Source: Epithemia pelagica (lineage: Eukaryota; Protista; Bacillariophyta). From it: a stretch of 64,000 nt of DNA. A model generated the notes under the pieces. It ran no database searches and was not told the DNA's origin. It was given only the letters and a program-made list of their open reading frames with translations. The translations under genes and the position numbers were made by a program. This document shows positions 1 through 19,401 of this stretch, in pieces; the stretch's first letter is position 1; each line of letters opens with the position of its first letter. The stretch is from positions 3,286,001 to 3,350,000 of the forward strand of contig OX337236.1 of NCBI GenBank assembly GCA_946965045.2, given 5' to 3'.

Positions 1-1265
1 AATTGGCCAAAAAGTCACACAGCGCTTGTTCTTCTTCATAGGGAATTTTCTTGGCTTCTTCGGCTTCAAGTTTGGCTTGATATTCGGCACGTTCCGCTTC
101 TCGTTTGGCCTTTTCTTCTTCGTATTGCATCTTCTTTTGCGCTTTAATGGCGCGTTGGTAGGTGAACCAGGCATTGTTGGCCGTTCGAAAGGCATCGCGT
201 TTGACATCCTTTTGGGTAAACAAGTCATTGATTTCTTTGCGGACCGCATCGCGTTTGGTAAAGAGTTCCTTCTTGGCATCCCGTTTGGTTTGATGGGCTT
301 CATCGAGTTCCTTCATGGCCTTGACAATGGCATCCATTTCGGCCGACACGGCATCAATTTCCTTATCCTTGGCCGAGATTTGTTCGGCCAAGGCCTTGCG
401 TTGGACCCGCATATCATCCAAGGCGGCATCCTTACTCTTGATATCCGTGACAAACTTTTTGGAGGCTTGCAGGGCATCCATTTCCTTGATGAGCTTCTTT
501 TCTTCTGTCAGCGACATGCTGGTGGTTTCTTGCAATTTTTGCAACTTGGCAATTTCCTTGTCAATGTCTTGGACGGAACCAAATCGGGCATTGCTCCGAG
601 CATCCTTCTTGTCCTTGAGCAATTTGTCATTGTCCGTCTTGAGGCGATCCAATTGAGCCCGGAGGGCCTTTTTTTCGTCAATGAGCGTCGTCTTGGTCTT
701 TTTGAAGGACGCCATTTGCGCGCGTTTTTCCGCCATGGTGGATTTGGACGTGGGATCGTCCATGGCTTGGTCAATTTGCTCTTGGACTTCCTTGCGAGCG
801 TCTTGCAAGGTTTGAATTTGTTCGTCCAAGGCGGCCAATTCCGCTTCGTGGGCCTCCTTGTTGGGTTTGTCGACCTACAAATTAGAAGTAACAAGAAGAA
901 GTAAAAAGCAGCAGCGCACAGATAGATGCATGAGTGTGTGAGAGAGAAGGCGATCCACACACAGTCCCATACTTTCTTCTCACACCCTGCGACGCTCTCG
1001 ACACGCACACACACACAACAACAACAACCATTGATCGATCAATAGAAAGATACATAGAGATACGTACTCGTGGAATGGGTTGGGTCAAATCGTACAATTC
1101 TTCAATGGGCTTTTGTTCTTCCCGTGGTCTGGGTTGACGGCCACCCTTTTTCGGTTTCGTGGTGGCACCATCGGTTGTAGTGGTGGTAGCATCGGTGGTC
1201 GGTGGTGCGCCCTCCGTGGCTGGTGGAGTGGCCTCTGCGACGGCGGGTTCGTCCGACGAAGACAT
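1..1265 (-). CDS. Coiled-coil protein, Bfr1-like (nuclear segregation/polysome-associated); two exons 1265-1068 and 874-<1, truncated by the window edge
   Basis: ATG at 1265 (MSSSDEPAV). GTACGT donor at 1067 and TTGTAG acceptor at 875 join in phase 0 to an open K/E/A-rich heptad frame (VDKPNKEAHEAEL...SMSLTEEKKLIKEM...KKIPYEEEQALCDFLAN). The Bfr1 resemblance is recalled, not searched. Confidence 0.7.
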
Positions 1266-1902
1266 GATGAGAGTAGTAGGTTTCTCCAAACAATCAAGAA
1301 AAGAAGAAATAGGTTGGTGTAGATCGAGTCACCAACCAAAATGAATCGATTGGTTGGTTGGTTGTGGTGAAGTGATGATGCTTTGGTCACAACAGCTCTC
1401 CTCTGCTGCCAACCACAAATGCTCCAACCACAAAAGGGTGCCAACACCTCTCGTCTTTCTCTTTCTCGTTTTCCTCTGCTAGCACGGTTGCCGTAGGATA
1501 AAGCCTCTGCAAGTTGTTGTTGCTGTTGTTGTTTGCTTGCTCTCGTCGTCGTTCCTTCTACAACACACTCACAACAAAAGGAAACAACCAACTTGTTGGT
1601 ATGGCAGCATTGCCCAAAGATACGTGGTGTGTGTAGGTACGACTTTTGGGTGTGGTGCGCGGTGCGTGATGCAGCGCGATGTAGGAGTAAAAAAAAGGAT
1701 GGCGAAGGAAACTCTTGGAGCGAGGCGCGACCCAAACAGGACACGTCCGTCCGTCTAACCTCTTCAAATGGATGGTCACGATGGACGACAGACAGACATC
1801 GGATGACGTCACTTCTTGAGGAGCGACCGATGTTTTTACGCGAGCGAATCTTTTGGTCGACTAATCCGCGACCTCACGGAACGTCGACGCAACGGACATT
1901 TA

Positions 1903-1936
1903 CAAGCTGAGTTCAGGGAGTATGTTCCTGACGTAG
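1903..1936 (+). repeat. Left terminal inverted repeat of the large ITm element
   Basis: CAAGCTGAGTTCAGGGAGTATGTTCCTGACGTAG, preceded by TA. Confidence 0.9.
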
Positions 1937-2292
1937 ACCCCTCGTAGATTTAGTACCATAAAATATAATCCTCAATAGCGTTTGGCCTGACTAGTGAATG
2001 AAAGTGTCCGACTCGTGACAACCCAGTGTCTGAATAATAAATTTTTTGTTTCGTACCGTGATGTGTGACAGCTTCCGAACGCTAGAATTCCGTCGAAAAT
2101 GATGAAAAAACGGTTGTTGTCTAACGACCATGGTGGAGGGCCATCCCAACCGTTCGAGATGTTGCCGAGCTGCATCCGGATGCTTTAGGGTTTACTTGAA
2201 CCACCCCAAATGGGGCAACATCTCAAACGGTTGGCATCATCCTCAATAATTCGATCATCCAACTCATCCCACGCAACACGGTCTACAACAGG

Positions 2293-5200
2293 ATGGAACG
2301 AAATTTTTCTGGGAAAGATATTCTTGACGTCTTTAAGACGCGATGCACCCGATCCTCGTTTGGATTCTGCAACAAGTGGATCCAAGACACCGAGATTGTA
2401 GGATACCTGAGAACTTGGTTGCCAGGACTGTCGACAATCAGATTGAATTCTCTTTTCTCTAGAGACATTGTCCTTAAACCCATTTTCGAAAATGAGGTGT
2501 CGGAACCAAACAAGTTTGGCTGGTACCGCCACAAAATCACAATCAATAAACAAAGATACACATTCTTGTATATAAGCTCCGACACAACAAAACTGCCAGT
2601 GATGTTGAACGATCACCAAGAATGGCTGGAGGCTGCAGCCGAGAATGTGATTCGGCGGTCGGGACGAGAGAAGCCAACGAAGCGAAGGAACGAAGACTCA
2701 CCAGGGGTACATGAAGGCACGGCAACTGTATCCAAGCAAGCAAGAAACACTACAACACCACCAGCAATGAAGAGCACTGCAACGCAGCAACATGGTCAAC
2801 CGCCACAAATTGGAGACAGCCCTACCGAAATGCAAACGTCACCACCTCACGACAACACAAATCAGGTGCTTGTTGGAGCAATCCAACATCCTGAATTGGC
2901 CACAGACGAAATCGGCCATGACCATCCACAGAGTTTGCCGATTGGTTTTTCAGTTTTCGAGAGTGAGATGATCCAAGGTCTATCGCAACAAATGGAAAGC
3001 GCCTGTTTTGATGAGCCAAGGAACCGTAGGCTCTTTGCCGGCAAATGCGATTCTCCAGGATCGTCAAAACGAAATCTTGAGCGATGGATAGAAACCCTTG
3101 AAAGGGCCATTTCCAACGTGGAGGCACTTCCGAATGTGGTTAACAAGGGAGACATCTTCCCCCCCAACCAGGAACAGCAACAGAGGGTACTGCTCAAGGC
3201 AACGTATTTACAACTTTCTTATAAGATAGCGTTGCTTGATATGCCACACGGTCGTACATGGCTGAACTGCATAAGCGAAGCCATAAGCAAAATGGAACAG
3301 ATTTATGGTGAAAAAGTAAAAAAACATCCCAAGACCATTGCTCGTTTTCACAGGTACTTTCGGGAAAACGACAGTTTCCCTCATCCCAACTACCACGTTC
3401 ATATTGGGAAAGAGCCATCGCCCGTCTTATTCGTTCACATACCTGAAGCAAAGGTAAAGTTTGAATGCTGGGCAAAGGAAAACCTGAGCACTCTTACAAC
3501 AGAGTCTGCTCTAATGTACCTGAGGACAACATTGCTTCCGGATATGCATACCATGATCGTACAAGAGTGCATGGATACGAATGCAACGCCAGTATCGTAC
3601 GAGGCCTTCTTGGCATCGATGAAGCTTTCCACCATTTCGCAAAGCACAGCGTGGCGATGTATTGCTGCTGCAGGGCTCGTGTTCAAGGAACACACGAAAA
3701 CATACTTCACTGATCGACACGAAAATGCTGAGAATGTTGCCCACAGAGCTGCTTTTGTCAAGAAGTACTTTAAGTGGGAAGAGCTGTCGTATCGGTGGGT
3801 GCAGCTCCCTACCGAGGATGCAATCAAACTTGAAAACGAAGGGAATGCGGGCAAGGAGAAGCTCTTGCCAAACAGCTTTGTATTTGAGTACACTGATGTA
3901 ACAACAGGCAAGCAGATGCGGGAGTACCATGTTGATGCCTTCCCAAGCGAATTTGAACGGTACATCAAACCAGAAAACACAATTCACAATGGAAACTTGT
4001 CACACAGGTTTCCCTCCGACCGCAAACCTGTCATCCTCATCGGCCAGGACGAATCGATCTACAAGCAGTTTTCCTTCTCGTCTAAGGCATGGTACACTAA
4101 AGATGGCGCAACTAAAATGCTGCCAAAGGATGATGGACATGGGATGATGATCAGCGCTTTTGTAAGCCGATCATGGGGCTTCCTTATGAACGGAAACCCG
4201 TTGCTTGCTGCGAGTCTATTTCGGATTAATGAACTCCGTCTACATGCGACACACAACAAATACGTCTCTACCGAGGCTGCAGTGAACCTCAATGGTCACA
4301 CTGCCAAGACTCCAATTACCAATGCCCAACCGTTCACTCGCTTTTTTGAATACGGAGCAGATAAAGAGGGATATTGGAATTATGAATACATGGCCTTGCA
4401 GTTGGAGGATATTGTCGATTGCCTCGTGGTCATGTTCCCCGCCCATGACTTTGTCTTTTTGTTCGACCAAAGCAGTGGTCATGGAAAACAACAATCCGAT
4501 GGGTTAAATGCTCTGAACATGAATAACGACTGGGGAGGAGCTGTTCCCAGCATGCGGGACACACAAATTATTGATCAAGCTTGCCTTGGCCCGTACAACC
4601 ATGACGACAAACTACGAGTTGGTGACGTACAACACCTCGTCTATCAGGAGAACGATCGTGGTCCAGTTGCTAAAAAAGGCCATCGTCTCAATGACGCGCA
4701 GCGTGTCGCATCGAAGAATACACACCGAACTGGTAGAAAGAAAAAGCGCAACCTCACAAAGAAGGAGCTCATGGCAAAACTTGTCCGGGTCATGGGACCT
4801 GGAATGCAACGTTCATTTCAATCGAAAAATGCTGGTGAACTACAGGACCTTTGTAAACGCTCCAACATTGCAACGGTGATTGAAGATGATGTGATCGAGG
4901 AAGGCTGGATGAATAATGCAAAAGGGCTCTTTCAAGTGTTATGGGAGCGGGGGTGGATAGACCCTAACAACATGATCAAGTACGTCAAGACAACCAGAGA
5001 TGCATGGTTGGAAGCGGATAAGAAGACTGTGAAAGAAGCCTATCAGGCGGACTACAAAAAGTACTCTATGGTTCATCTGATGAGCGAATGCTCCGATTTC
5101 AAGAACGAAAAATCTGCAATGGAGAAGCTGGCGGAAGACTTGTCTGAACGACATCGTTGCAGGATCGAGATTCTCGTATCGACCAAGTATCACTGTGAAA

Positions 5201-5559
5201 TGGCCGGTGAGGGGATCGAGTATGGCTGGGGTTACTCAAAAAAAGTCTTTCGTGCTTTCTCACTGAATGAGAAGAAAGACAAAGCTGCCTTTTTACGATG
5301 TTTGACAGCGAGCCTGAAGAAAACAACACCCGAAATCATGCGGAAAATGTCAGCAAAGGCACGTCGCTATATGCTCGCGTACTTGTTATACGATCAAAAT
5401 TCCAACAACAGCGACTATGCAGCTGCGGGCCTCTCGTATGCCGAAATTGAAAAGATGTCAAAAGCAATCAAGTGTCACCGATCCGCCTTCGACCAAGATC
5501 ATGGCTTCATCTCACGTCTCTGGAGAGAAACGCAAGGATCTGGTGCAGTAGAAACCTGA
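2293..5559 (+). CDS. DDE transposase (ITm superfamily, long D-E insertion), 1088 aa, intact
   Basis: Motifs GQDESIY (D586), FLFDQSSGH (D725), KGLFQVLWERG and TKYHCEMAGEGIEYGWG (E976, equivalent to the PxxSPELNPIE motif). Uninterrupted ORF between the TIRs. Confidence 0.85.
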   Translation: MERNFSGKDILDVFKTRCTRSSFGFCNKWIQDTEIVGYLRTWLPGLSTIRLNSLFSRDIVLKPIFENEVSEPNKFGWYRHKITINKQRYTFLYISSDTTKLPVMLNDHQEWLEAAAENVIRRSGREKPTKRRNEDSPGVHEGTATVSKQARNTTTPPAMKSTATQQHGQPPQIGDSPTEMQTSPPHDNTNQVLVGAIQHPELATDEIGHDHPQSLPIGFSVFESEMIQGLSQQMESACFDEPRNRRLFAGKCDSPGSSKRNLERWIETLERAISNVEALPNVVNKGDIFPPNQEQQQRVLLKATYLQLSYKIALLDMPHGRTWLNCISEAISKMEQIYGEKVKKHPKTIARFHRYFRENDSFPHPNYHVHIGKEPSPVLFVHIPEAKVKFECWAKENLSTLTTESALMYLRTTLLPDMHTMIVQECMDTNATPVSYEAFLASMKLSTISQSTAWRCIAAAGLVFKEHTKTYFTDRHENAENVAHRAAFVKKYFKWEELSYRWVQLPTEDAIKLENEGNAGKEKLLPNSFVFEYTDVTTGKQMREYHVDAFPSEFERYIKPENTIHNGNLSHRFPSDRKPVILIGQDESIYKQFSFSSKAWYTKDGATKMLPKDDGHGMMISAFVSRSWGFLMNGNPLLAASLFRINELRLHATHNKYVSTEAAVNLNGHTAKTPITNAQPFTRFFEYGADKEGYWNYEYMALQLEDIVDCLVVMFPAHDFVFLFDQSSGHGKQQSDGLNALNMNNDWGGAVPSMRDTQIIDQACLGPYNHDDKLRVGDVQHLVYQENDRGPVAKKGHRLNDAQRVASKNTHRTGRKKKRNLTKKELMAKLVRVMGPGMQRSFQSKNAGELQDLCKRSNIATVIEDDVIEEGWMNNAKGLFQVLWERGWIDPNNMIKYVKTTRDAWLEADKKTVKEAYQADYKKYSMVHLMSECSDFKNEKSAMEKLAEDLSERHRCRIEILVSTKYHCEMAGEGIEYGWGYSKKVFRAFSLNEKKDKAAFLRCLTASLKKTTPEIMRKMSAKARRYMLAYLLYDQNSNNSDYAAAGLSYAEIEKMSKAIKCHRSAFDQDHGFISRLWRETQGSGAVET

Positions 5560-5971
5560 TCTAATCTCCATTTATCATCAAAATGCATGTAACTTAACTA
5601 TTTATAACAGCAATCCATTTTATTGAATGTATTTCTTGTCAGTTATTGGTATCAATGATCACTTCCGTGTTGCGTGCTCGTGTTGCGTGTTGGATTATCA
5701 GTTTGTAAGTACCTCGAAAATGTGAGAGAGCGAGAAAATGGACGATTTTCGGAGCAGACCTCGCGCGAAACACGCCTCCCTCTCCGAAAACGCGCACGCA
5801 TCGCAAAACTGGCACGCAAATCCTTAAGTAACTCAGCCCACATACCAAAACTTCACCGTTTTTTAGTATGTGAGCTCAAGATTTTTTTTTTGGAATGTGG
5901 GCTGAGGGCTGAGGAGAATGCTGCGTTTCGTGTTTCTTGTGTTTCGTGTTTCGAGTTTTTGCGTTTCGACC

Positions 5972-8821
5972 ATGGGGAAACCAAGCCCTAAGAAACAGTA
6001 TTCAAAAGCAGGCGCTCAAAAACGAGACAGCATGAGTGACAAAGGAAATCTTGACGCTCTTATACTTGCAATAGATGCAGCGGAAGAGCAGTCAGCCAAA
6101 GCAGCAGCGGCGCCCGAAGCAGCAGCAGCCGCAGCACCCGAAGCAGCAGCAACAGACGAAGCGACAACAACAAAGCACCATCGGTTTCTTTCGGATCAAG
6201 ACTTTGCCGAAGTGAAGGATAAAAAGCTTGCAGATGTTCGGCGTGGCCATCCAGAGAAGGACCACAGCAAACAGTATTCGGAAACTCAAATGCGGCAGCT
6301 CCTCATCGATACGCGCACAGAGGACTACAAGAAAGGCATCGAGGAAGTGGAGAAACTCCCTTCTCGTTCTGGACGGGATCCAATCAGGACTTTCACCGAA
6401 GGCCTCAAGACGCTCTCCAAGATCAAAGACAGTGCTGTACTTGCCTGTGCTATGGGAGAGTATGTCTCACGGAAGATTTCGGCCACTTTTTCGGTCCAAG
6501 AAGCTCCAATTCGGAAGCCCGGTTCTGGCTTGCTAAAGGGGAAGATTGTGCCACTTTCGAGTGGAATGGGTCTCCCTGTCAAGAAGAACAGAAAACATAC
6601 CTTCCCGATCGGCAAGCATGTCGGTTACACATTTGCGAACAATCCGGTAGTCAAGATCTACCTTGGAAAAATGCTTCTGTTTGAGGTGAAGGAGTCAAAA
6701 CTCCCAGGCGCCGGGTTTGGCGTTTTTGCAGTTCGGACAATCAAAGATGGTGAAGTGATTGGTGCGTACACGGGAAACGACGTCACGTCTCGGACAGTTG
6801 TACCCAACGAGTACGCGATTCAGTTCGGACGTGACAATCGAAGGCTTCAAGCAGACAACGACGATCACTTCGGCATGGGGCTGCACTTAATCAACGACCA
6901 CCAACACCATCTGTACGGTACAGACAATCCACCGGATGAATCGGACGACGGTTACAACGTGAGAATCATGCCGAATCTTCTAGTTAAGGCAATCAAAAAT
7001 ATTGAGCCGGGCGACGAGCTGTCTTTGTTTTATAACCTTACGGACGAATCGCCGACGTCCTCCGAACAGGTTATCCGACCGTCGACGAAAGGTGACGACG
7101 ACGAAGACGAGGGAAAGAAACGCGGTCGACCCAGTGATGAAAATGAAGACGACGGGAAAAAAACAAAGAAGCCTGTCTTAACTTCTCCTTCTACTGTTTT
7201 CCGTCCAGTTGCTACTGTTGCTCGTCCTCCTTCTCCGCCTCCTCCGCAATACGTTTCTGAGCACTACAATTCGCCCCCTCAGCTGCCGCCGCATTATCCT
7301 CCGCAATATTATCACCATCCTCCGCCGCAGTACAATTATCCTCCGCCGCAGTACAATTACCCTCCGCCGCAGTACAATCATCATCCTCCGCCGCATTATC
7401 CTTATCCTCCGCCGCATTATCCTCATCCTCCGACGAGTCATCCTCCGCCGCAGTACCATGGACATCCTCCGTCCTACAATCAACCCAACTATGGAGGTTA
7501 CGGGGGGACTCTACCTTCATCGCTCCATCATCAGCAGCAACAACAACGCACGACCCAGCCGGTCGAAGGCTCACCCCACCTCCTTCCGAGCAATCCCATC
7601 CCACCTGCAGCACAAGCTCAACCCGTGCTCCTTCCCAGCAGTCCCGTCCTACCTGCAGCACAAGCTCAACCCGCCACTCAAGCCAATCCCAGCCCTAGTA
7701 CTGGAATGTTCGTACCAGTGGTAATGGCAGAAGATGACACGGATAGTATTTTTGAGGAGATGGAAGCGATCGATGCGAAAGCGAAGGAGAATGAGCGTTT
7801 CGAGAAAATGAAGTTGTTACATAGAGAATTGCGCTCGAAGTATTTCAAATGGCTGTACGATATTGAAAACAAAATGTATCGAGGATATTTTTTGACAACT
7901 CCGCCAGATCTCCTCGAAATGTTGGAGAATGCGTGGCACAGCACAGGCTTGGACCAGAAAGGAAAGGGCAAATTTTTCAAATCTGTTCAAGACTACACAC
8001 CAAATTTGTTGATGGCAATGATGGAACATGAGGGAATGGTGTCCAACATTCGGTACTTCGGCCACGTTAACCCCGAACATGCTGCAAAGGTCACGGCCAA
8101 TTTCAAGCAGCTGCTTGCCTCAGCTCTCTATGGGATGAACTACGCAAAAGATGATTCATTTGCGGACCAAATCAACATTCACCTTTCGTTCATGAAGACC
8201 ACAGAGGCAAAAGTTCAAGAACCTCACATCGACTTCTTGTTCCAGAGCGTAACAGGGAACATGTCCGAAGGTCCCAAAACGCCCTCCGGGAAGCAACCAA
8301 TCAAAAAGACTCGGAGAGCGAATGCAGATCTGCCACTCCGGGAACGCATGCCTTTTATTGTTTTCATGCCCCTGGCGGAGGAGGGTATGTCCGTTGAATT
8401 GTGGAGTTTCCGCGGTGAGAAGCACAAGGATTATATGAACGAGCTGGGTAAAGTGGTACATATCCCATATGGCACGTTTCTCCTCGTTCGAGGAGATACT
8501 GTCCATGCTGGTGGCTTTAAGACTGGGGAGATGGGGAATCCACGTGCACATTTCTACGTGTACCAAGGAAAAGATGGGACCGTTCACGATCCCATGCCAA
8601 AGAACACCTACAACCTTCCTTCTGGAGAAAGCAGGCTTTCCGACTACTACTTCCATGACAAAGACATCCCTGGTGTTCGCCGAAGTGGGCTCGTTGGGGT
8701 TAAGCTTTGGGTCGGGGACAAGCGTGTTTGCGTCCTAAGTGACAATCCTCGTAAGGTGCTTGTGGCCGCGAATTATAAACCTGGTAAGAAGATCGCGAGC
8801 AAAGAAGCCGATCAAACTTAG
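5972..8821 (+). CDS. Transposon cargo: SET domain + Pro/Tyr-rich region + 2OG-Fe(II) dioxygenase-like domain, 949 aa
   Basis: SET motifs LFEVKESKLPGAGFGVFA...HLIND...AIKNIEPGDELSLFY (~6677-7035). DSBH motifs QEPHIDF (8225), IPYGTFLLVRGDTVHAGG (8504) and NPRAHFYV (8543). Intact ORF from the ATG at 5972. Confidence 0.8.
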   Translation: MGKPSPKKQYSKAGAQKRDSMSDKGNLDALILAIDAAEEQSAKAAAAPEAAAAAAPEAAATDEATTTKHHRFLSDQDFAEVKDKKLADVRRGHPEKDHSKQYSETQMRQLLIDTRTEDYKKGIEEVEKLPSRSGRDPIRTFTEGLKTLSKIKDSAVLACAMGEYVSRKISATFSVQEAPIRKPGSGLLKGKIVPLSSGMGLPVKKNRKHTFPIGKHVGYTFANNPVVKIYLGKMLLFEVKESKLPGAGFGVFAVRTIKDGEVIGAYTGNDVTSRTVVPNEYAIQFGRDNRRLQADNDDHFGMGLHLINDHQHHLYGTDNPPDESDDGYNVRIMPNLLVKAIKNIEPGDELSLFYNLTDESPTSSEQVIRPSTKGDDDEDEGKKRGRPSDENEDDGKKTKKPVLTSPSTVFRPVATVARPPSPPPPQYVSEHYNSPPQLPPHYPPQYYHHPPPQYNYPPPQYNYPPPQYNHHPPPHYPYPPPHYPHPPTSHPPPQYHGHPPSYNQPNYGGYGGTLPSSLHHQQQQQRTTQPVEGSPHLLPSNPIPPAAQAQPVLLPSSPVLPAAQAQPATQANPSPSTGMFVPVVMAEDDTDSIFEEMEAIDAKAKENERFEKMKLLHRELRSKYFKWLYDIENKMYRGYFLTTPPDLLEMLENAWHSTGLDQKGKGKFFKSVQDYTPNLLMAMMEHEGMVSNIRYFGHVNPEHAAKVTANFKQLLASALYGMNYAKDDSFADQINIHLSFMKTTEAKVQEPHIDFLFQSVTGNMSEGPKTPSGKQPIKKTRRANADLPLRERMPFIVFMPLAEEGMSVELWSFRGEKHKDYMNELGKVVHIPYGTFLLVRGDTVHAGGFKTGEMGNPRAHFYVYQGKDGTVHDPMPKNTYNLPSGESRLSDYYFHDKDIPGVRRSGLVGVKLWVGDKRVCVLSDNPRKVLVAANYKPGKKIASKEADQT

Positions 8822-9347
8822 ATCTTTCCTCGTGGTGAAAGTGTGTTATTGTTGAAAAAGAATACCATGGTACGTTGAGTTGCAGTATGACATTAAGATT
8901 TATTAGTTTATTCCTTCATATTATACTTTAGTACATTGTCGTGTTTGTTTCCATGAAGTGTCGAAAACGCAAAATATGAGATAAGAATCATAGCTCGTCT
9001 GGGACCAATCACGAACTCCCTCGTACATCCATACGAGACGCGCCCGCAAACCGGGACCCAACTGCCGACACTGGGAAGCTGGATGACGACGATGACGATG
9101 ATGATGACCATGACAATCACGACCATAACGATGATGAAGAGGACAAACGGGATGAGCGATGATAGCTACAACAAGGACGACTACAATACAACGACGACAA
9201 TGATAGCCACGACAATGACGAGGACTTGGACGACGACAATAATGATAATCACAACAAGAACGACTGTAGAAGCACTACAAGTACCATGATGACAAATCGA
9301 TTCATATTTAGTGATTAAGGATACCTAAAACGTCCATCAGTAGATAT

Positions 9348-10254
9348 CTAGTACGCCTCGTCCTCATGATCCAAGTAATCGGGACCAAAAAGCCCGTTTT
9401 GCTGCGTACCGATGAAGTCTTCTTGGGTCTCGAGAAATCCATCATCGGCATACGAATCAATGGATGTCCGGTATGCACGGGAAGGATTGCTAAAGAACAA
9501 AGGAGGAGACGACAGGATGTTTTCTCCCAATGCCAGCGACTCATTCAAAGTCTGGCGAGGGTCTGTCGCTCCACTTTCCTTCACCTGTTCCTCAGCAATC
9601 CGACGCTGGAAAGCATGCTTCTGGGAGGGGGTCAGTGCGAAAGCTCGAGACGCCACCTTCGGGGAAGAAGTTACTTTCTTCGGGGTCACATAAGACTCTG
9701 GAGTCTTGTTCTCGACGTCGTCCTCCTTCTTGATCTCCTTCTCGGGCTTGCTGTCGGGCTTGTTGTCGGGCTTGCTGTTGGGTTTGGTGTCTGTGGCAGC
9801 AGAGGGCGCGTCGTGAGAAAGGGAGACTCAAAACCAACAATGAACAATCAAACTTACCTTCTTTGCCGACAGCCTCGATCGCAAGGAGCTCTGCCGCGAT
9901 ATCCGACAGGTTAGCGCATTCGACGTCCTTGTTGCTGACGAAGAACACTGGGATACCATCTTCATCCCCAATGGTGAGTTGCCACTGTTTTGCGCGCTCG
10001 TGCCACGACGAAGGACCCTCAAGGTTGAAGGTCACATGCTTCTTTGTCGAAGCGGGACACTTCGTCGTCGTCGTCTTCTTCTTCTTCGACGTTTTGTTGT
10101 CCACGGCCGTCTTTGTCTTCATTTTCTTGTTTGCCTTGTTTCCCTTGTTTCCCTTGTCGGAGGGAAATGCGGTTGTGGAGGGAGCTGCGGCGGAGTCCTC
10201 CTGCTCCTTCTTCGCAGACTCAGCTCGTTTGGTAGCACTACGCGTCTGGCGCAT
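9348..10254 (-). CDS. Transposon cargo, hypothetical Lys-rich protein; two exons (10254-9858, 9790-9348), 279 aa
   Basis: ATG at 10254 (MRQTRSATKR). The G|GTAAGT donor at 9857 and CACAG acceptor at 9791 (67-bp phase-1 intron) join two open frames; stop at 9348. Confidence 0.65.
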
Positions 10255-10425
10255 CGTTGGAAAGTGAGAACACAATAGGGATTCGTTCGTTTGATTGTTG
10301 TGTTTGTTTGTTTGATTGTTGCCCGCTCTCCGTTCTTGTGTCATCTAGGGAATCCCCCCGCGCTCATTCGTGAACAATATCGGCGCGCGCCACAAAATCA
10401 ACTTGCAGCATGAAGCAACTTCCGA

Positions 10426-10998
10426 ATGACCCGCCGTGCAATGGAACAATCAAACAGAGACGACAGGAAGAGGCAAGGAAGAAGAAACAAGATGACCAAC
10501 ATGAGGACGAAGTTCGAGTTCAACGAAGAGGATGGCCGTGAGGGTGGTGCTGGTCTCCCGTTCAAGTCGTGCTTTTATGCCAGCGATGTTTGCGCGCTCA
10601 TCGGGCCCATGTCGAGAAACAAGGACACTGGCCACAACATCGTCGACCGTGGCCATCTGCTTGTGCAGCGGGAGCTTGCGACCGACTACCTACGGATTGC
10701 AGTCTTTGACCGGGATGCAACAAGCGAGCATGAGGAACCAGCGTTGGTTGTTCCAGTTGGGTTCATTGCTCTGTCGCACCTGGACCAGGTCTCTGGAAAG
10801 ACGAGCAAGAACGGACCTCCCATGGGACGCATCCGCCTCTACACACGCTGCTCCATCAACCCTAAAGCCTGCATGGAACCCCAGGTCGTTACAATCTACA
10901 TGGGCAGCAAGGATATGGATCGCTTCAACATTTCGCTTGGTGCGATGATGCTCAAGCACCCGCTTCAAAATCTCTTCTTTAATCATCAACAAGCCTAG
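10426..10998 (+). CDS. Transposon cargo, hypothetical protein, 190 aa
   Basis: Open frame with globular beta-rich composition (GHLLVQREL...YLRIAVFD...GRIRLYTRC...VVTIYMG), divergent from the 10254 gene. No recognisable family. Confidence 0.55.
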   Translation: MTRRAMEQSNRDDRKRQGRRNKMTNMRTKFEFNEEDGREGGAGLPFKSCFYASDVCALIGPMSRNKDTGHNIVDRGHLLVQRELATDYLRIAVFDRDATSEHEEPALVVPVGFIALSHLDQVSGKTSKNGPPMGRIRLYTRCSINPKACMEPQVVTIYMGSKDMDRFNISLGAMMLKHPLQNLFFNHQQA

Positions 10999-11592
10999 AT
11001 AGTGAACAATGTAGCAGCGTTTTATGATTATCATTTGAGTAGGATCTTCATTCTCTATGAATACGATCTAATTCTATAGTTGTGTTACGTTTACCGTACA
11101 ATACATTGCGTTCAGGTACGGCTGTGTGAGTCACAACAAAGAAAAGAGCATCAATCTTTGTTGTGAACGACGCAACTTCTAGTCTAAGTTCCATATATCT
11201 AACGAGAAGAATATCAATTTTTGACGTGAACAACGCTACAAGTGTTCATAGTCTTTGTTCTATCTTCTATCATTCGATTCTACAATAGAGGTGCATTGGT
11301 TGCACCAAGTTTTGCCGTGAGTCGCCGTAGTAAATCGCGCGGCGACCACCTTCAACTAGATAAAACGACACCTACAAAACGAATGCAGCGCCGACATCGT
11401 TCTCCATGCTCAACCCATGAATGGAGAAGAGGTTCAGAGCATGGGATCATGGAGCCGTCTCCTATTTGGCAAGAGATCGGTCAAAAGGACCGTTCACCAT
11501 GGTCAATTTTTGGTAGAACGGTAGAGGCATAAATAGAAGGGCTATATTAAGGGGATGGCTCGCGCGGATTACGTAGATTTCCTACTGGAGCG

Positions 11593-11626
11593 CTACGTCA
11601 GGAACATTCTGTCTGAACTCAGCTTG
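11593..11626 (-). repeat. Right terminal inverted repeat of the large ITm element
   Basis: Reverse complement CAAGCTGAGTTCAGACAGAATGTTCCTGACGTAG, followed by TA. Confidence 0.9.
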
Positions 11627-11628
11627 TA

Positions 11629-12117
11629 GGCCGTTCCTTGATATTCTGCAAAAACAAAAATCGACACATGACATCACCTTTTTGTAGACAATTGCGCGAC
11701 ACGCCGTCCTTTGGCATTTACAAAACCAAAACCTATAACCGCACTTTTTCCCCCAAGGCCCCCAATAGTCCCCATATTCACTTTGATGATTTGATTACTA
11801 CAATTATCAAAGTAAGACATTAGGAGGACGTTCCGTCTTCCTCTTCATTGAGGTTAGGGGGACCGTTGGAGTCGAACGCGCGCCGTTCAAATCCTAAACC
11901 GTCATTTTTGTTTCTGTAGGGCCCAATGTACACTAGCAAGAAGAAAGCACTATCCCTAATGTCTGTTCAGCTTTTGCCGGCCTGCAAAAGTTGGACCCAA
12001 CTTTTGCAGCCTCAAAAGCTGAAACAGCGTCGAACCCGGATTTGACGCCATATTTCCGGGTTTTTTGTGACGTGTCACCCTCCAACTTTTGTTTTTGCAG
12101 AAGATCAAGGAACGGCC
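11629..12117. mobile_element. Tourist-like (PIF/Harbinger-type) MITE, 489 bp
   Basis: 31-bp TIRs GGCCGTTCCTTGAT(A/C)TTCTGCAAAAACAAAA at 11629-11659 and 12087-12117 (30/31). TTA at 12118-12120; the matching left TTA is at 1900-1902 once the ITm element is removed. Internal palindromes; no ORF. Confidence 0.85.
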
Positions 12118-12291
12118 TTAGTCCTCGCTTCACATTTTGTGTGGAGCCAGGCGCGTCGGTCGACGCTACCCCCCTAGCGGGTGCGCGCGGCAGCGTTAAA
12201 ATAGATTGTACCTTTTTTTTTTTTTTACACCTTTCACGTTCACGGACCGTTGGTCTCATTGTTTCTCATTCCTGTCGATGAGCACAGAAGC

Positions 12292-19097: not shown

Positions 19098-19401
19098 TGG
19101 TGGAGACATGTATTTCGTTAGCTGAAACAGATCCTTTAGGAACTATTCAACTGCCACCACAGAACATTGAGAAGCATGGGGAAGGACGTAATCTCCAGAC
19201 TGGCGCAACCAGGTGGACTGCCGTTCAAATAAACTTGCTGTTGGTGACTCTTTTGTCGACACATATATTATGCGGTTGTGGTGCTGTCATGTCGATAGCG
19301 TACGTACGACAGACACTCTCTGTACACATCGGTCCGCACCCATCAGAGCCGCAAACACTCGCTCGCGATCCTCATAAATTCCGCAGTCAACGTTTGGAGC
19401 C

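Follow-up and report, generated by a model that had tools for sequence, protein, structure and literature searches.

Classical Tc1/mariner elements are about 1.3–2.5 kb long and encode a transposase of about 340–360 amino acids (aa), in which 34–41 residues lie between the second aspartate (D) and the glutamate (E) of the catalytic triad; in transposases of the broader IS630/Tc1/mariner (ITm) group, strand 1 is followed by DE(S/T) and strand 4 by D-N-A-x-x-H, and P-x-L-N-P-I-E-x-x-W precedes the last helix. The Tec/TBE elements of ciliates are related to the ITm elements, measure several kb, and encode a transposase together with two further proteins. Here, we describe an element found in a 64,000-nucleotide (nt) stretch of the genome of the diatom Epithemia pelagica (contig OX337236.1, positions 3,286,001 to 3,350,000; hereafter, the window), in which it occupies positions 1903–11626, a length of 9,724 bp, and is bordered by TA at 1901–1902 and at 11627–11628. 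Its four genes encode a transposase (open reading frame 1, ORF1), a protein with a SET domain (ORF2) and two further proteins (ORF3 and ORF4). The element resembles the ITm elements Mos1, Hsmar1/Metnase and Sleeping Beauty in its TA duplication, its short terminal inverted repeats (TIRs), the RNase H-like core of its DDE transposase and the local motifs around the acidic residues, but differs from them in its length of 9.7 kb, a transposase of about 1,090 aa, a D–E spacing of about 250 residues, the lack of a Pfam match and the presence of three extra genes. The ciliate elements differ from it in their accessory genes, in their hosts and in their removal during macronuclear development. We regard the Epithemia element, with a probability of about three in four, as an autonomous and very recently active cut-and-paste DNA transposon with a giant ITm-like transposase and three genes that were acquired anciently, have been retained and likely act on chromatin.

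Several described systems share single traits with this element. The preliminary description of the locus stated that classical elements encode only a transposase, which is correct as a rule but not absolute, as precedents exist in the three-gene mariner elements of giant algal viruses, which encode a transposase, an endonuclease and a methyltransferase or Fanzor1 (PMC3627910). These viral elements also combine a TA duplication with a transposase and further proteins; they are, however, single-copy and virus-borne and have a transposase of normal size (PMC3627910), whereas the Epithemia element is multi-copy and nuclear and combines a predicted SET-type protein lysine methyltransferase with an oxygenase-like domain and two further proteins. 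HarbingerS and MuDR elements of Phytophthora carry SET genes, which have been read as a counter to epigenetic silencing (Repbase Reports 2014, as cited in PMC12730594); like the Epithemia element, they are stramenopile DNA transposons with a gene for a SET histone methyltransferase, but they belong to PIF/Harbinger and Mutator, produce other target duplications, and are described in PMC12730594 with no mention of an oxygenase fusion or an ITm-type carrier. Fungal DNA transposons (KDZ, Plavaka, PHISTA and others) encode TET/JBP dioxygenases dependent on 2-oxoglutarate and iron, or 2OG-Fe(II) dioxygenases, which have been proposed to edit epigenetic marks in favor of the element (PMC12730594). 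The likeness here is a transposon-borne Fe(II)/2-oxoglutarate oxygenase, which is probable in the case of ORF2; the fungal enzymes are TET/JBP proteins acting on 5-methylcytosine, whereas the ORF2 domain falls into no Pfam family, has PhyH-like leads only and is fused to SET. Finally, SETMAR/Metnase of anthropoid primates is an immobile host gene fusion that arose when Hsmar1 landed beside a SET gene (PMC2847698). It likewise associates a SET methyltransferase with a mariner-type transposase, and Metnase is the top structural match of ORF1, but in the window the SET protein and the transposase are encoded by separate genes within a mobile element. The combination of an ITm-type carrier with a SET enzyme, an oxygenase-like domain and two more conserved genes occurs in none of the systems compared. 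In the literature on TcMar-Sagan and on SET-bearing ITm elements of diatoms, searches turned up no account of the transposase family with the giant insertion, Repbase and Dfam lying outside this comparison.

The mobility of the element is evident from its copies. A search of the source assembly yielded four further full copies (L002–L005, the window itself being L006); the exact 1,088-aa ORF1 protein is encoded on 5 contigs of one ENA assembly, and L002–L005 match window positions 1901–11629, and no further, at 99.93–99.98% identity. All 5 copies have TA directly outside both ends, their flanks and neighboring genes are unrelated, and the five insertion sites adjoin ordinary genes. There are 9 variable positions among the 5 copies, which differ by 1–4 bases over their 9.7 kb; the proteins of ORF1, ORF2 and ORF4 are identical in all of them, ORF3 differs by one residue or one in-frame codon, and none of the four genes is disrupted in any copy. 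The near identity of the five copies indicates very recent transposition. These results bear out the preliminary description in its proposals of an intact transposase, three further intact genes and recent activity, and the comparison of copies that it called for shows the same ends, the same TA and the same gene order in L002–L005. In a public protein collection, the ORF1 cluster comprises 43 sequences at an identity of at least 90%. In contigs from 2 runs of the organism, the k-mer depth is about 2,800–5,000 in the element and about 90–170 in the flank, a ratio of about 20–30 that is not equivalent to a copy number. Pieces of the element at 99–100% identity also occur in marine sediment metagenomes. 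An older copy (L001), 96.9% identical, has the left end with its TA and keeps an identical layout as far as window position 7033, at which point similarity ends; this copy is probably interrupted by a long terminal repeat (LTR) retrotransposon, the remainder lying beyond the fetched locus. A loose end at 1901 in the raw contigs corresponds to the flank of L001.

The ends of the element are sharply defined. The left end, which reads CAAGCTGAGTTCAGGGAGTATGTTCCTGACGTAG from 1903, and the reverse-complemented right end have 31 of 34 positions in common; the first 14 of these are perfect (CAAGCTGAGTTCAG, from 1903 and, as the reverse complement, from 11626), and weaker similarity extends to about 45 nt. 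An 18-nt terminal motif, allowing up to 3 mismatches, has just 2 sites in the 64-kb window, where 0.15 would be expected by chance. The 34-bp TIRs and the TA duplication reported in the preliminary description are thus real, both being reproduced by 5 independent insertions. The boundaries are supported independently by a miniature inverted-repeat transposable element (MITE) at 11629–12117, whose 31-nt inverted ends are 97% complementary. After in-silico removal of the 9.7-kb element and one TA, TTA stands on both sides of this MITE (1900–1902 and 12118–12120). As a short non-coding element that has inverted ends and a TTA/TAA duplication of 3 bp, the MITE is PIF/Harbinger-like, and it is older than the 9.7-kb element. 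As its TTA is restored on removal, the 9.7-kb element landed in the TA of the left duplication of the MITE, which fixes both the boundaries and the order of events; the argument to this effect in the preliminary description holds.

The transposase itself belongs to a large family. A word-indexed search identified 38 relatives of ORF1 of similar length, including proteins of the diatom Fragilaria crotonensis, and a profile search of 1.84 billion representative sequences identified 11,734 relatives at E ≤0.001; among the best 150 of these 11,734 matches, all of which are close kin, no link to annotated DDE_3 proteins was found. Three motifs, GQDES (containing D586), FLFD(H/Q)SSGH (D725) and PK(F/Y)HxE..GEGIEYxW (E976), are invariant or nearly so in 26–30 relatives, and the 250 residues between D725 and E976 are occupied by an extra domain. 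In an AlphaFold model of ORF1 residues 440–1020, with a mean predicted local distance difference test (pLDDT) score of 85 and with the first 439 residues outside the model, D586 is located on strand 1 of an RNase H-like fold, D725 where strand 4 ends and E976 where the helix following strand 5 begins; strands 4 and 5 are separated by an inserted domain of about 230 residues. As modeled, the three putative catalytic residues are arranged as in a DDE transposase. ITm transposases have an N-terminal paired-like helix-turn-helix domain for DNA binding; in the model of ORF1 there are helices ahead of the core, and the Pfam model HTH_33 matches just 3 of 30 relatives, at E 0.1. An exhaustive structural alignment against 48,161 solved chains gave as its top four matches Metnase (Z 12.5), Mos1 (12.2 and 11.8) and Sleeping Beauty (11.8), all of them Tc1/mariner catalytic domains, each with 175–199 aligned residues that span the insertion and cover nearly the whole reference domain; retroviral integrases reached Z ≤10. 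Foldseek against the PDB returned weak matches only, with Mos1 at a probability of 0.90–0.96 and E >0.05. A shape search of the ESM Atlas with the model yielded IS630 clusters from bacteria, 100% of whose members carry DDE_3, and a feature search of the Atlas with ORF1 also pointed to DDE_3.

Compared with the ITm signatures as they are generally known, the three motifs of ORF1 appear to correspond well. The TA duplication, the bounding TIRs and a fold nearest to the solved ITm transposases agree with the ITm group, while the curated Pfam models and the DD34–41E/D spacing do not. By its fold, its target and its local motifs, ORF1 is therefore best described as a predicted enzyme of the ITm type, and as a probable member or close sister of IS630/Tc1/mariner. 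The earlier assignment to Tc1/mariner is accordingly retained as regards the TA duplication, the best structural matches and the resemblance of the motifs, and is qualified by the missing Pfam match and the D–E spacing of about 250 residues. The second match of the Atlas shape search was a cluster of 476-aa proteins from basidiomycetes, 43% of them with DDE_3, in which 364 residues were aligned, exceeding the plain ITm core. To judge from the model, the extra domain of ORF1 may have relatives in fungi, and we would guess at a link between this cluster and TcMar-Sagan, which is named as a class only, mostly in basidiomycete genomes (genome papers).

The three additional genes are shared with diverged relatives. 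The same assembly contains three sister subfamilies (L007–L009) with transposases 38–53% identical to ORF1, each with TA outside ends beginning C(A/T)AGCTGGTT and with the gene order and orientation of the window element: transposase, SET gene, minus-strand two-ORF gene and ORF4 homologue. ORF4 is 41–67% identical to its counterparts in the three subfamilies and the tail of ORF3 32–56%, and the SET homologue of L007 scores 25.7 bits, above the Pfam cut-off. Only the window subfamily and L009 have the oxygenase-like domain, which forms an ORF of its own in the frameshifted L009 copy. A distant relative (P0017, 32% identical) is a 3.57-kb one-gene element whose identical protein is found on 15 metagenome contigs, and which is bounded in three loci by TA|TGGCAGGTTTC...GAAACCTGCCA|TA; many further relatives are located on contigs of 3.4–5.9 kb. 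No accessory genes were found in the Fragilaria crotonensis loci L010 and L016, of which L010, the one scanned for ends, has no clear ends, nor on the metagenome contigs L011, L017 and L018, which are short. At L010:13745–15316, 1.6 kb downstream of the ORF1 relative, there is a piggyBac-type transposase gene (DDE_Tnp_1_7) and no SET gene.

Since the same gene order is found in three diverged sister subfamilies, the accessory genes are old and conserved genes of the element rather than a recent capture, and since the distant relatives have one gene, they were presumably added once in the past. The simplest account is a history of three steps: a one-gene element with a giant transposase would have come first, one clade would then have acquired the three genes anciently and just once, and the oxygenase-like domain would later have been added to the SET gene. 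Retention across such divergence argues that the accessory genes serve the element. The preliminary description spoke of a cargo; the three genes do travel with the transposase, but they are better understood as long-conserved accessory genes of a clade. It had also named beforehand two findings that would speak against a cargo-bearing transposon, namely cargo genes at the syntenic position without TIRs or transposase in relatives, and transposase copies never linked to this cargo. Both points came out in favor of the transposon, and the transposase is linked to the same genes in the same order in L002–L005 and in the three subfamilies.

The SET domain of ORF2 scores 26.7–28.9 bits against a Pfam cut-off of 22.4 and contains the GxG (LPGAGFGVFA) and ELxxxY (GDELSLFY) motifs; the solved sequences nearest to it are the PR/SET domains of MECOM, PRDM16 and PRDM12 (E 1.5e-4 to 3e-3), and ORF2 is predicted to be a lysine methyltransferase of the PR/SET type. 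Its C-terminal domain has no Pfam match. A full-length search with ORF2 returned its own cluster only, its candidates having probably been crowded out by low-complexity words; searched alone, the C-terminal domain yielded 3 relatives, all in the same assembly. The HxD motif, the second H and the R are invariant in 4 relatives of the domain, the feature search of the Atlas leads to 2OG-Fe(II)/PhyH clusters (0.92–0.93), and a profile search against the PDB matched the PhyH-type oxygenase FtmOx1 at the VHAGG..PR motif with a non-significant E of about 1; a structure model from the 4-sequence alignment was unusable (pLDDT 36). On these grounds, the tail of ORF2 is a probable Fe(II)/2-oxoglutarate oxygenase. 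The predicted ORF3 product is 309 aa long, or 279 aa from the Met at 10254, and combines an N-terminal part that is basic and rich in Lys and Thr with a QWQLTIGDEDG core, which is conserved, and with the acidic motif DDGFLETQED towards the C terminus. A reading of this minus-strand gene as a single 250-aa ORF was rejected, as the conserved C-terminal part lies in the other frame and is joined by the 67-nt intron. ORF4 has no recognizable family, and an Atlas lead to a C2-like fold is weak. The positions of all features are given in Table 1.

Table 1. Features of the 9.7-kb element and its borders in the 64-kb window of Epithemia pelagica, and the three sister subfamilies in the same assembly
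Feature	Length	Position in window	Strand	Basis or remark
TTA, left target-site duplication of the neighboring MITE	3 nt	1900–1902	.	TA 1901–1902 within it is the insertion site of the 9.7-kb element, duplicated
Left TIR, CAAGCTGAGTTCAG...	34 nt	1903–1936	+	Same end in 5 copies and in older copy L001
ORF1, giant ITm-like DDE transposase	1,088 aa	2293–5559	+	Invariant residues, structure model, fold matches
Putative catalytic residues of ORF1		D586, 4048–4050; D725, 4465–4467; E976, 5218–5220	+	Conservation and model
ORF2, SET protein with probable oxygenase domain	949 aa from 5972 (967 aa from 5918)	5972–8821	+	Pfam SET, repeats, oxygenase motifs
SET domain of ORF2		~6713–7036	+	
ORF2 linker of 7-residue Pro/Gln/Tyr-rich repeats		~7261–7485	+	
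ORF2 C-terminal 2OG-Fe(II)-oxygenase-like domain	~370 residues	~7700–8818	+	
Oxygenase-like motif residues		H, 8225–8227; D, 8231–8233; H, 8504–8506; R, 8543–8545	+	
ORF3, two predicted exons (10344–9858 and 9790–9348)	Intron of 67 nt (9857–9791, GTAAGT..CAG)	9348–10344	-	Same two-ORF layout in L007 and L008
ORF4	190 aa	10426–10998	+	Homologues in three sister subfamilies
Right TIR		11593–11626	-	End comparison, motif search, 5 copies
Right copy of TA target-site duplication		11627–11628	.	5-copy comparison
Older MITE (11629–12117), then right TTA (12118–12120)	489 bp (MITE)	11629–12120	.	
Sister subfamily L009	9.8 kb			74–79% DNA identity to the window element; decayed
Sister subfamily L008	8.4 kb			Transposase 44% identical to ORF1
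Sister subfamily L007	7.0 kb			Transposase 38% identical to ORF1; 25 cluster members

These features suggest a mode of action in which ORF1 would recognize the CAAGCTG... inverted ends, excise the element and insert it at TA, which would be duplicated, with D586, D725 and E976 on the RNase H-like fold as the putative active site. The likeliest target of the three accessory genes would be chromatin, or chromatin proteins, in or near the element; for the SET(-oxygenase) protein and for ORF3, with its basic and acidic parts, the transposition complex itself is another candidate target. The outcome would be that the element is kept expressed and mobile despite silencing by the host, or that the target chromatin is prepared for insertion.

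A number of observations weigh against an active ITm-like transposon with chromatin genes. No empty site or excision footprint was seen in the contigs, which were compared over window positions 1–6000 and hence over one end of the element; none of the runs on record as RNA contains the element, so that its transcription and the ORF3 intron are predicted. The SET domain of ORF2 reads N-D-H in place of the canonical NHS, and the oxygenase assignment is weak, consisting of motifs, a language-model lead and a non-significant PDB match. ORF1 and 30 relatives match no Pfam transposase model (DDE_3, DDE_1 or Transposase_1) at E up to 1, neither ORF1 alone nor the profile of the 30 relatives has a sequence match in the PDB, the spacing of about 250 residues between D and E in the predicted protein is far outside that of every named ITm family, and the margin over the retroviral integrases in the structural alignment is only about 2 Z units. 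Together with the large extra domain and the sheer size of the family, these properties of ORF1 would fit a separate, undescribed DDE superfamily that shares only the RNase H-like fold and the TA target with Tc1/mariner. We consider this unlikely, as the four best structural matches are all Tc1/mariner domains covered over nearly their whole length, the shape and feature searches lead to IS630/DDE_3 clusters, with the partly DDE_3 fungal cluster aligning through the extra domain as well, and TA is duplicated in all subfamilies; in addition, DES after strand 1, D-x-S-x-x-H and PK.H.E....IE..W resemble the ITm signatures. A segmental duplication or an assembly artefact with a repeat unit of 9.7 kb, for which it could be said that all full copies come from one assembly, has a probability close to nil: identity ends exactly at the inverted ends in each copy, TA is present on both sides, the flanking genes are unrelated, the sequence is also present in independent runs of the organism and in marine sediment metagenomes, and the loose-end junction in the raw contigs equals the flank of L001. 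Exact ends, paired TA, unrelated flanks and independent runs together exclude chance, segmental duplication and assembly error.

As to the role of the accessory genes within such a transposon, a tentative proposal, which we hold to be possible and well short of probable, is that the SET-oxygenase protein, ORF3 and ORF4 form a transposon-encoded chromatin module, with a lysine-methyl "writer" and an oxidative "eraser" or hydroxylase, that the clade would need in order to escape silencing in the diatom or to prepare target chromatin. The three genes could instead be passengers, that is, host genes captured once that hitch-hike with the element and contribute nothing to transposition or expression; capture of host genes by DNA transposons is known in general, and the one-gene distant relatives indicate that the transposase family as a whole does not require them. 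Useless passengers would, however, be expected to decay or disappear over the distance that separates four subfamilies with transposases only 38–53% identical, and smaller elements usually transpose better, whereas here the gene order survives, ORF4, the ORF3 tail and SET (the last at Pfam-level scores) are still recognizable, and each of the five young copies has its four genes intact. That the genes are passengers and nothing more is therefore less likely, and in our view improbable. A live alternative, to which we likewise give a low probability, is that the accessory proteins restrain or steer the element, the PR/SET-like enzyme laying a repressive or targeting mark that limits copy number or directs insertions to safe chromatin. 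The proximity of the ORF2 SET domain to the PR domains of MECOM, PRDM16 and PRDM12 is in line with this, as is the self-regulation known for some Tc1/mariner elements (general statement, bioRxiv 10.1101/2021.09.26.461848); on the other hand, the SET similarity is too weak for a substrate or mark to be deduced, recent multiplication to many near-identical copies is unlike strong self-restraint, and the insertions lie next to ordinary genes.

Some further observations concern the insertion sites and the non-coding parts of the element. The base after the right TA is G in all 5 young copies, and two of the sites read ATT-TA-GGCC; there may be a target preference beyond TA, judging from this small sample of five sites. 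The L003 copy (9580–9610, 19337–19370) lies inside a short tandem repeat, the approximately 28 nt to the left of the insertion (ATTTTTTCTTTAGGGGCTGCTGATGGGG) recurring nearly unchanged just to its right. In L001, similarity to the element is lost from L001:14746, and an RVT_2 (Copia-type) gene is located 4.3 kb further on, at L001:19078–23162. Hairpin-forming inverted repeats are found upstream of ORF1 (2136–2166/2214–2244, 31 nt, 84% complementarity) and upstream of ORF2 (5832–5850/5888–5906, 19 nt, 95%), the latter with a counterpart in L009 (13654–13730, 20 nt at 100%); the two hairpins may be regulatory sites. Over window positions 1801–6000, the summed contig depth of run X3 varies 20-fold between bins (3,400 to 81,000) and is much flatter in runs X1 and X2. 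If X3, the type of which is not on record, were RNA, this pattern would mean that the transposase region is strongly expressed. Some small non-canonical joints in the same run were considered as introns and rejected, their sides being short (22–26 nt).

To our knowledge, active DNA transposons have rarely been caught in diatoms. The Epithemia element is a natural and presumably still mobile one with defined ends, target and transposase, and might be developed for work on diatoms, either as a genetic tool or for insertion mutagenesis. It widens the range of ITm-type enzymes to proteins of about 1,000 aa whose catalytic core encloses a large domain, and the size of its transposase family, which is unannotated and comprises more than 11,000 representative sequences, suggests that many genome annotations probably miss such elements. 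With a transposase linked to a SET enzyme, with or without the oxygenase-like domain, and to two further proteins, it also provides a testable case of transposon-borne chromatin enzymes, which joins the SET-bearing Harbinger and MuDR elements of oomycetes and the TET/JBP-bearing elements of fungi. If the accessory proteins do form a chromatin module, this would be an element of the ITm type that brings an epigenetic counter-defence of its own and belongs to a hitherto unnamed branch of the superfamily, one with a 250-residue insertion in the catalytic domain.

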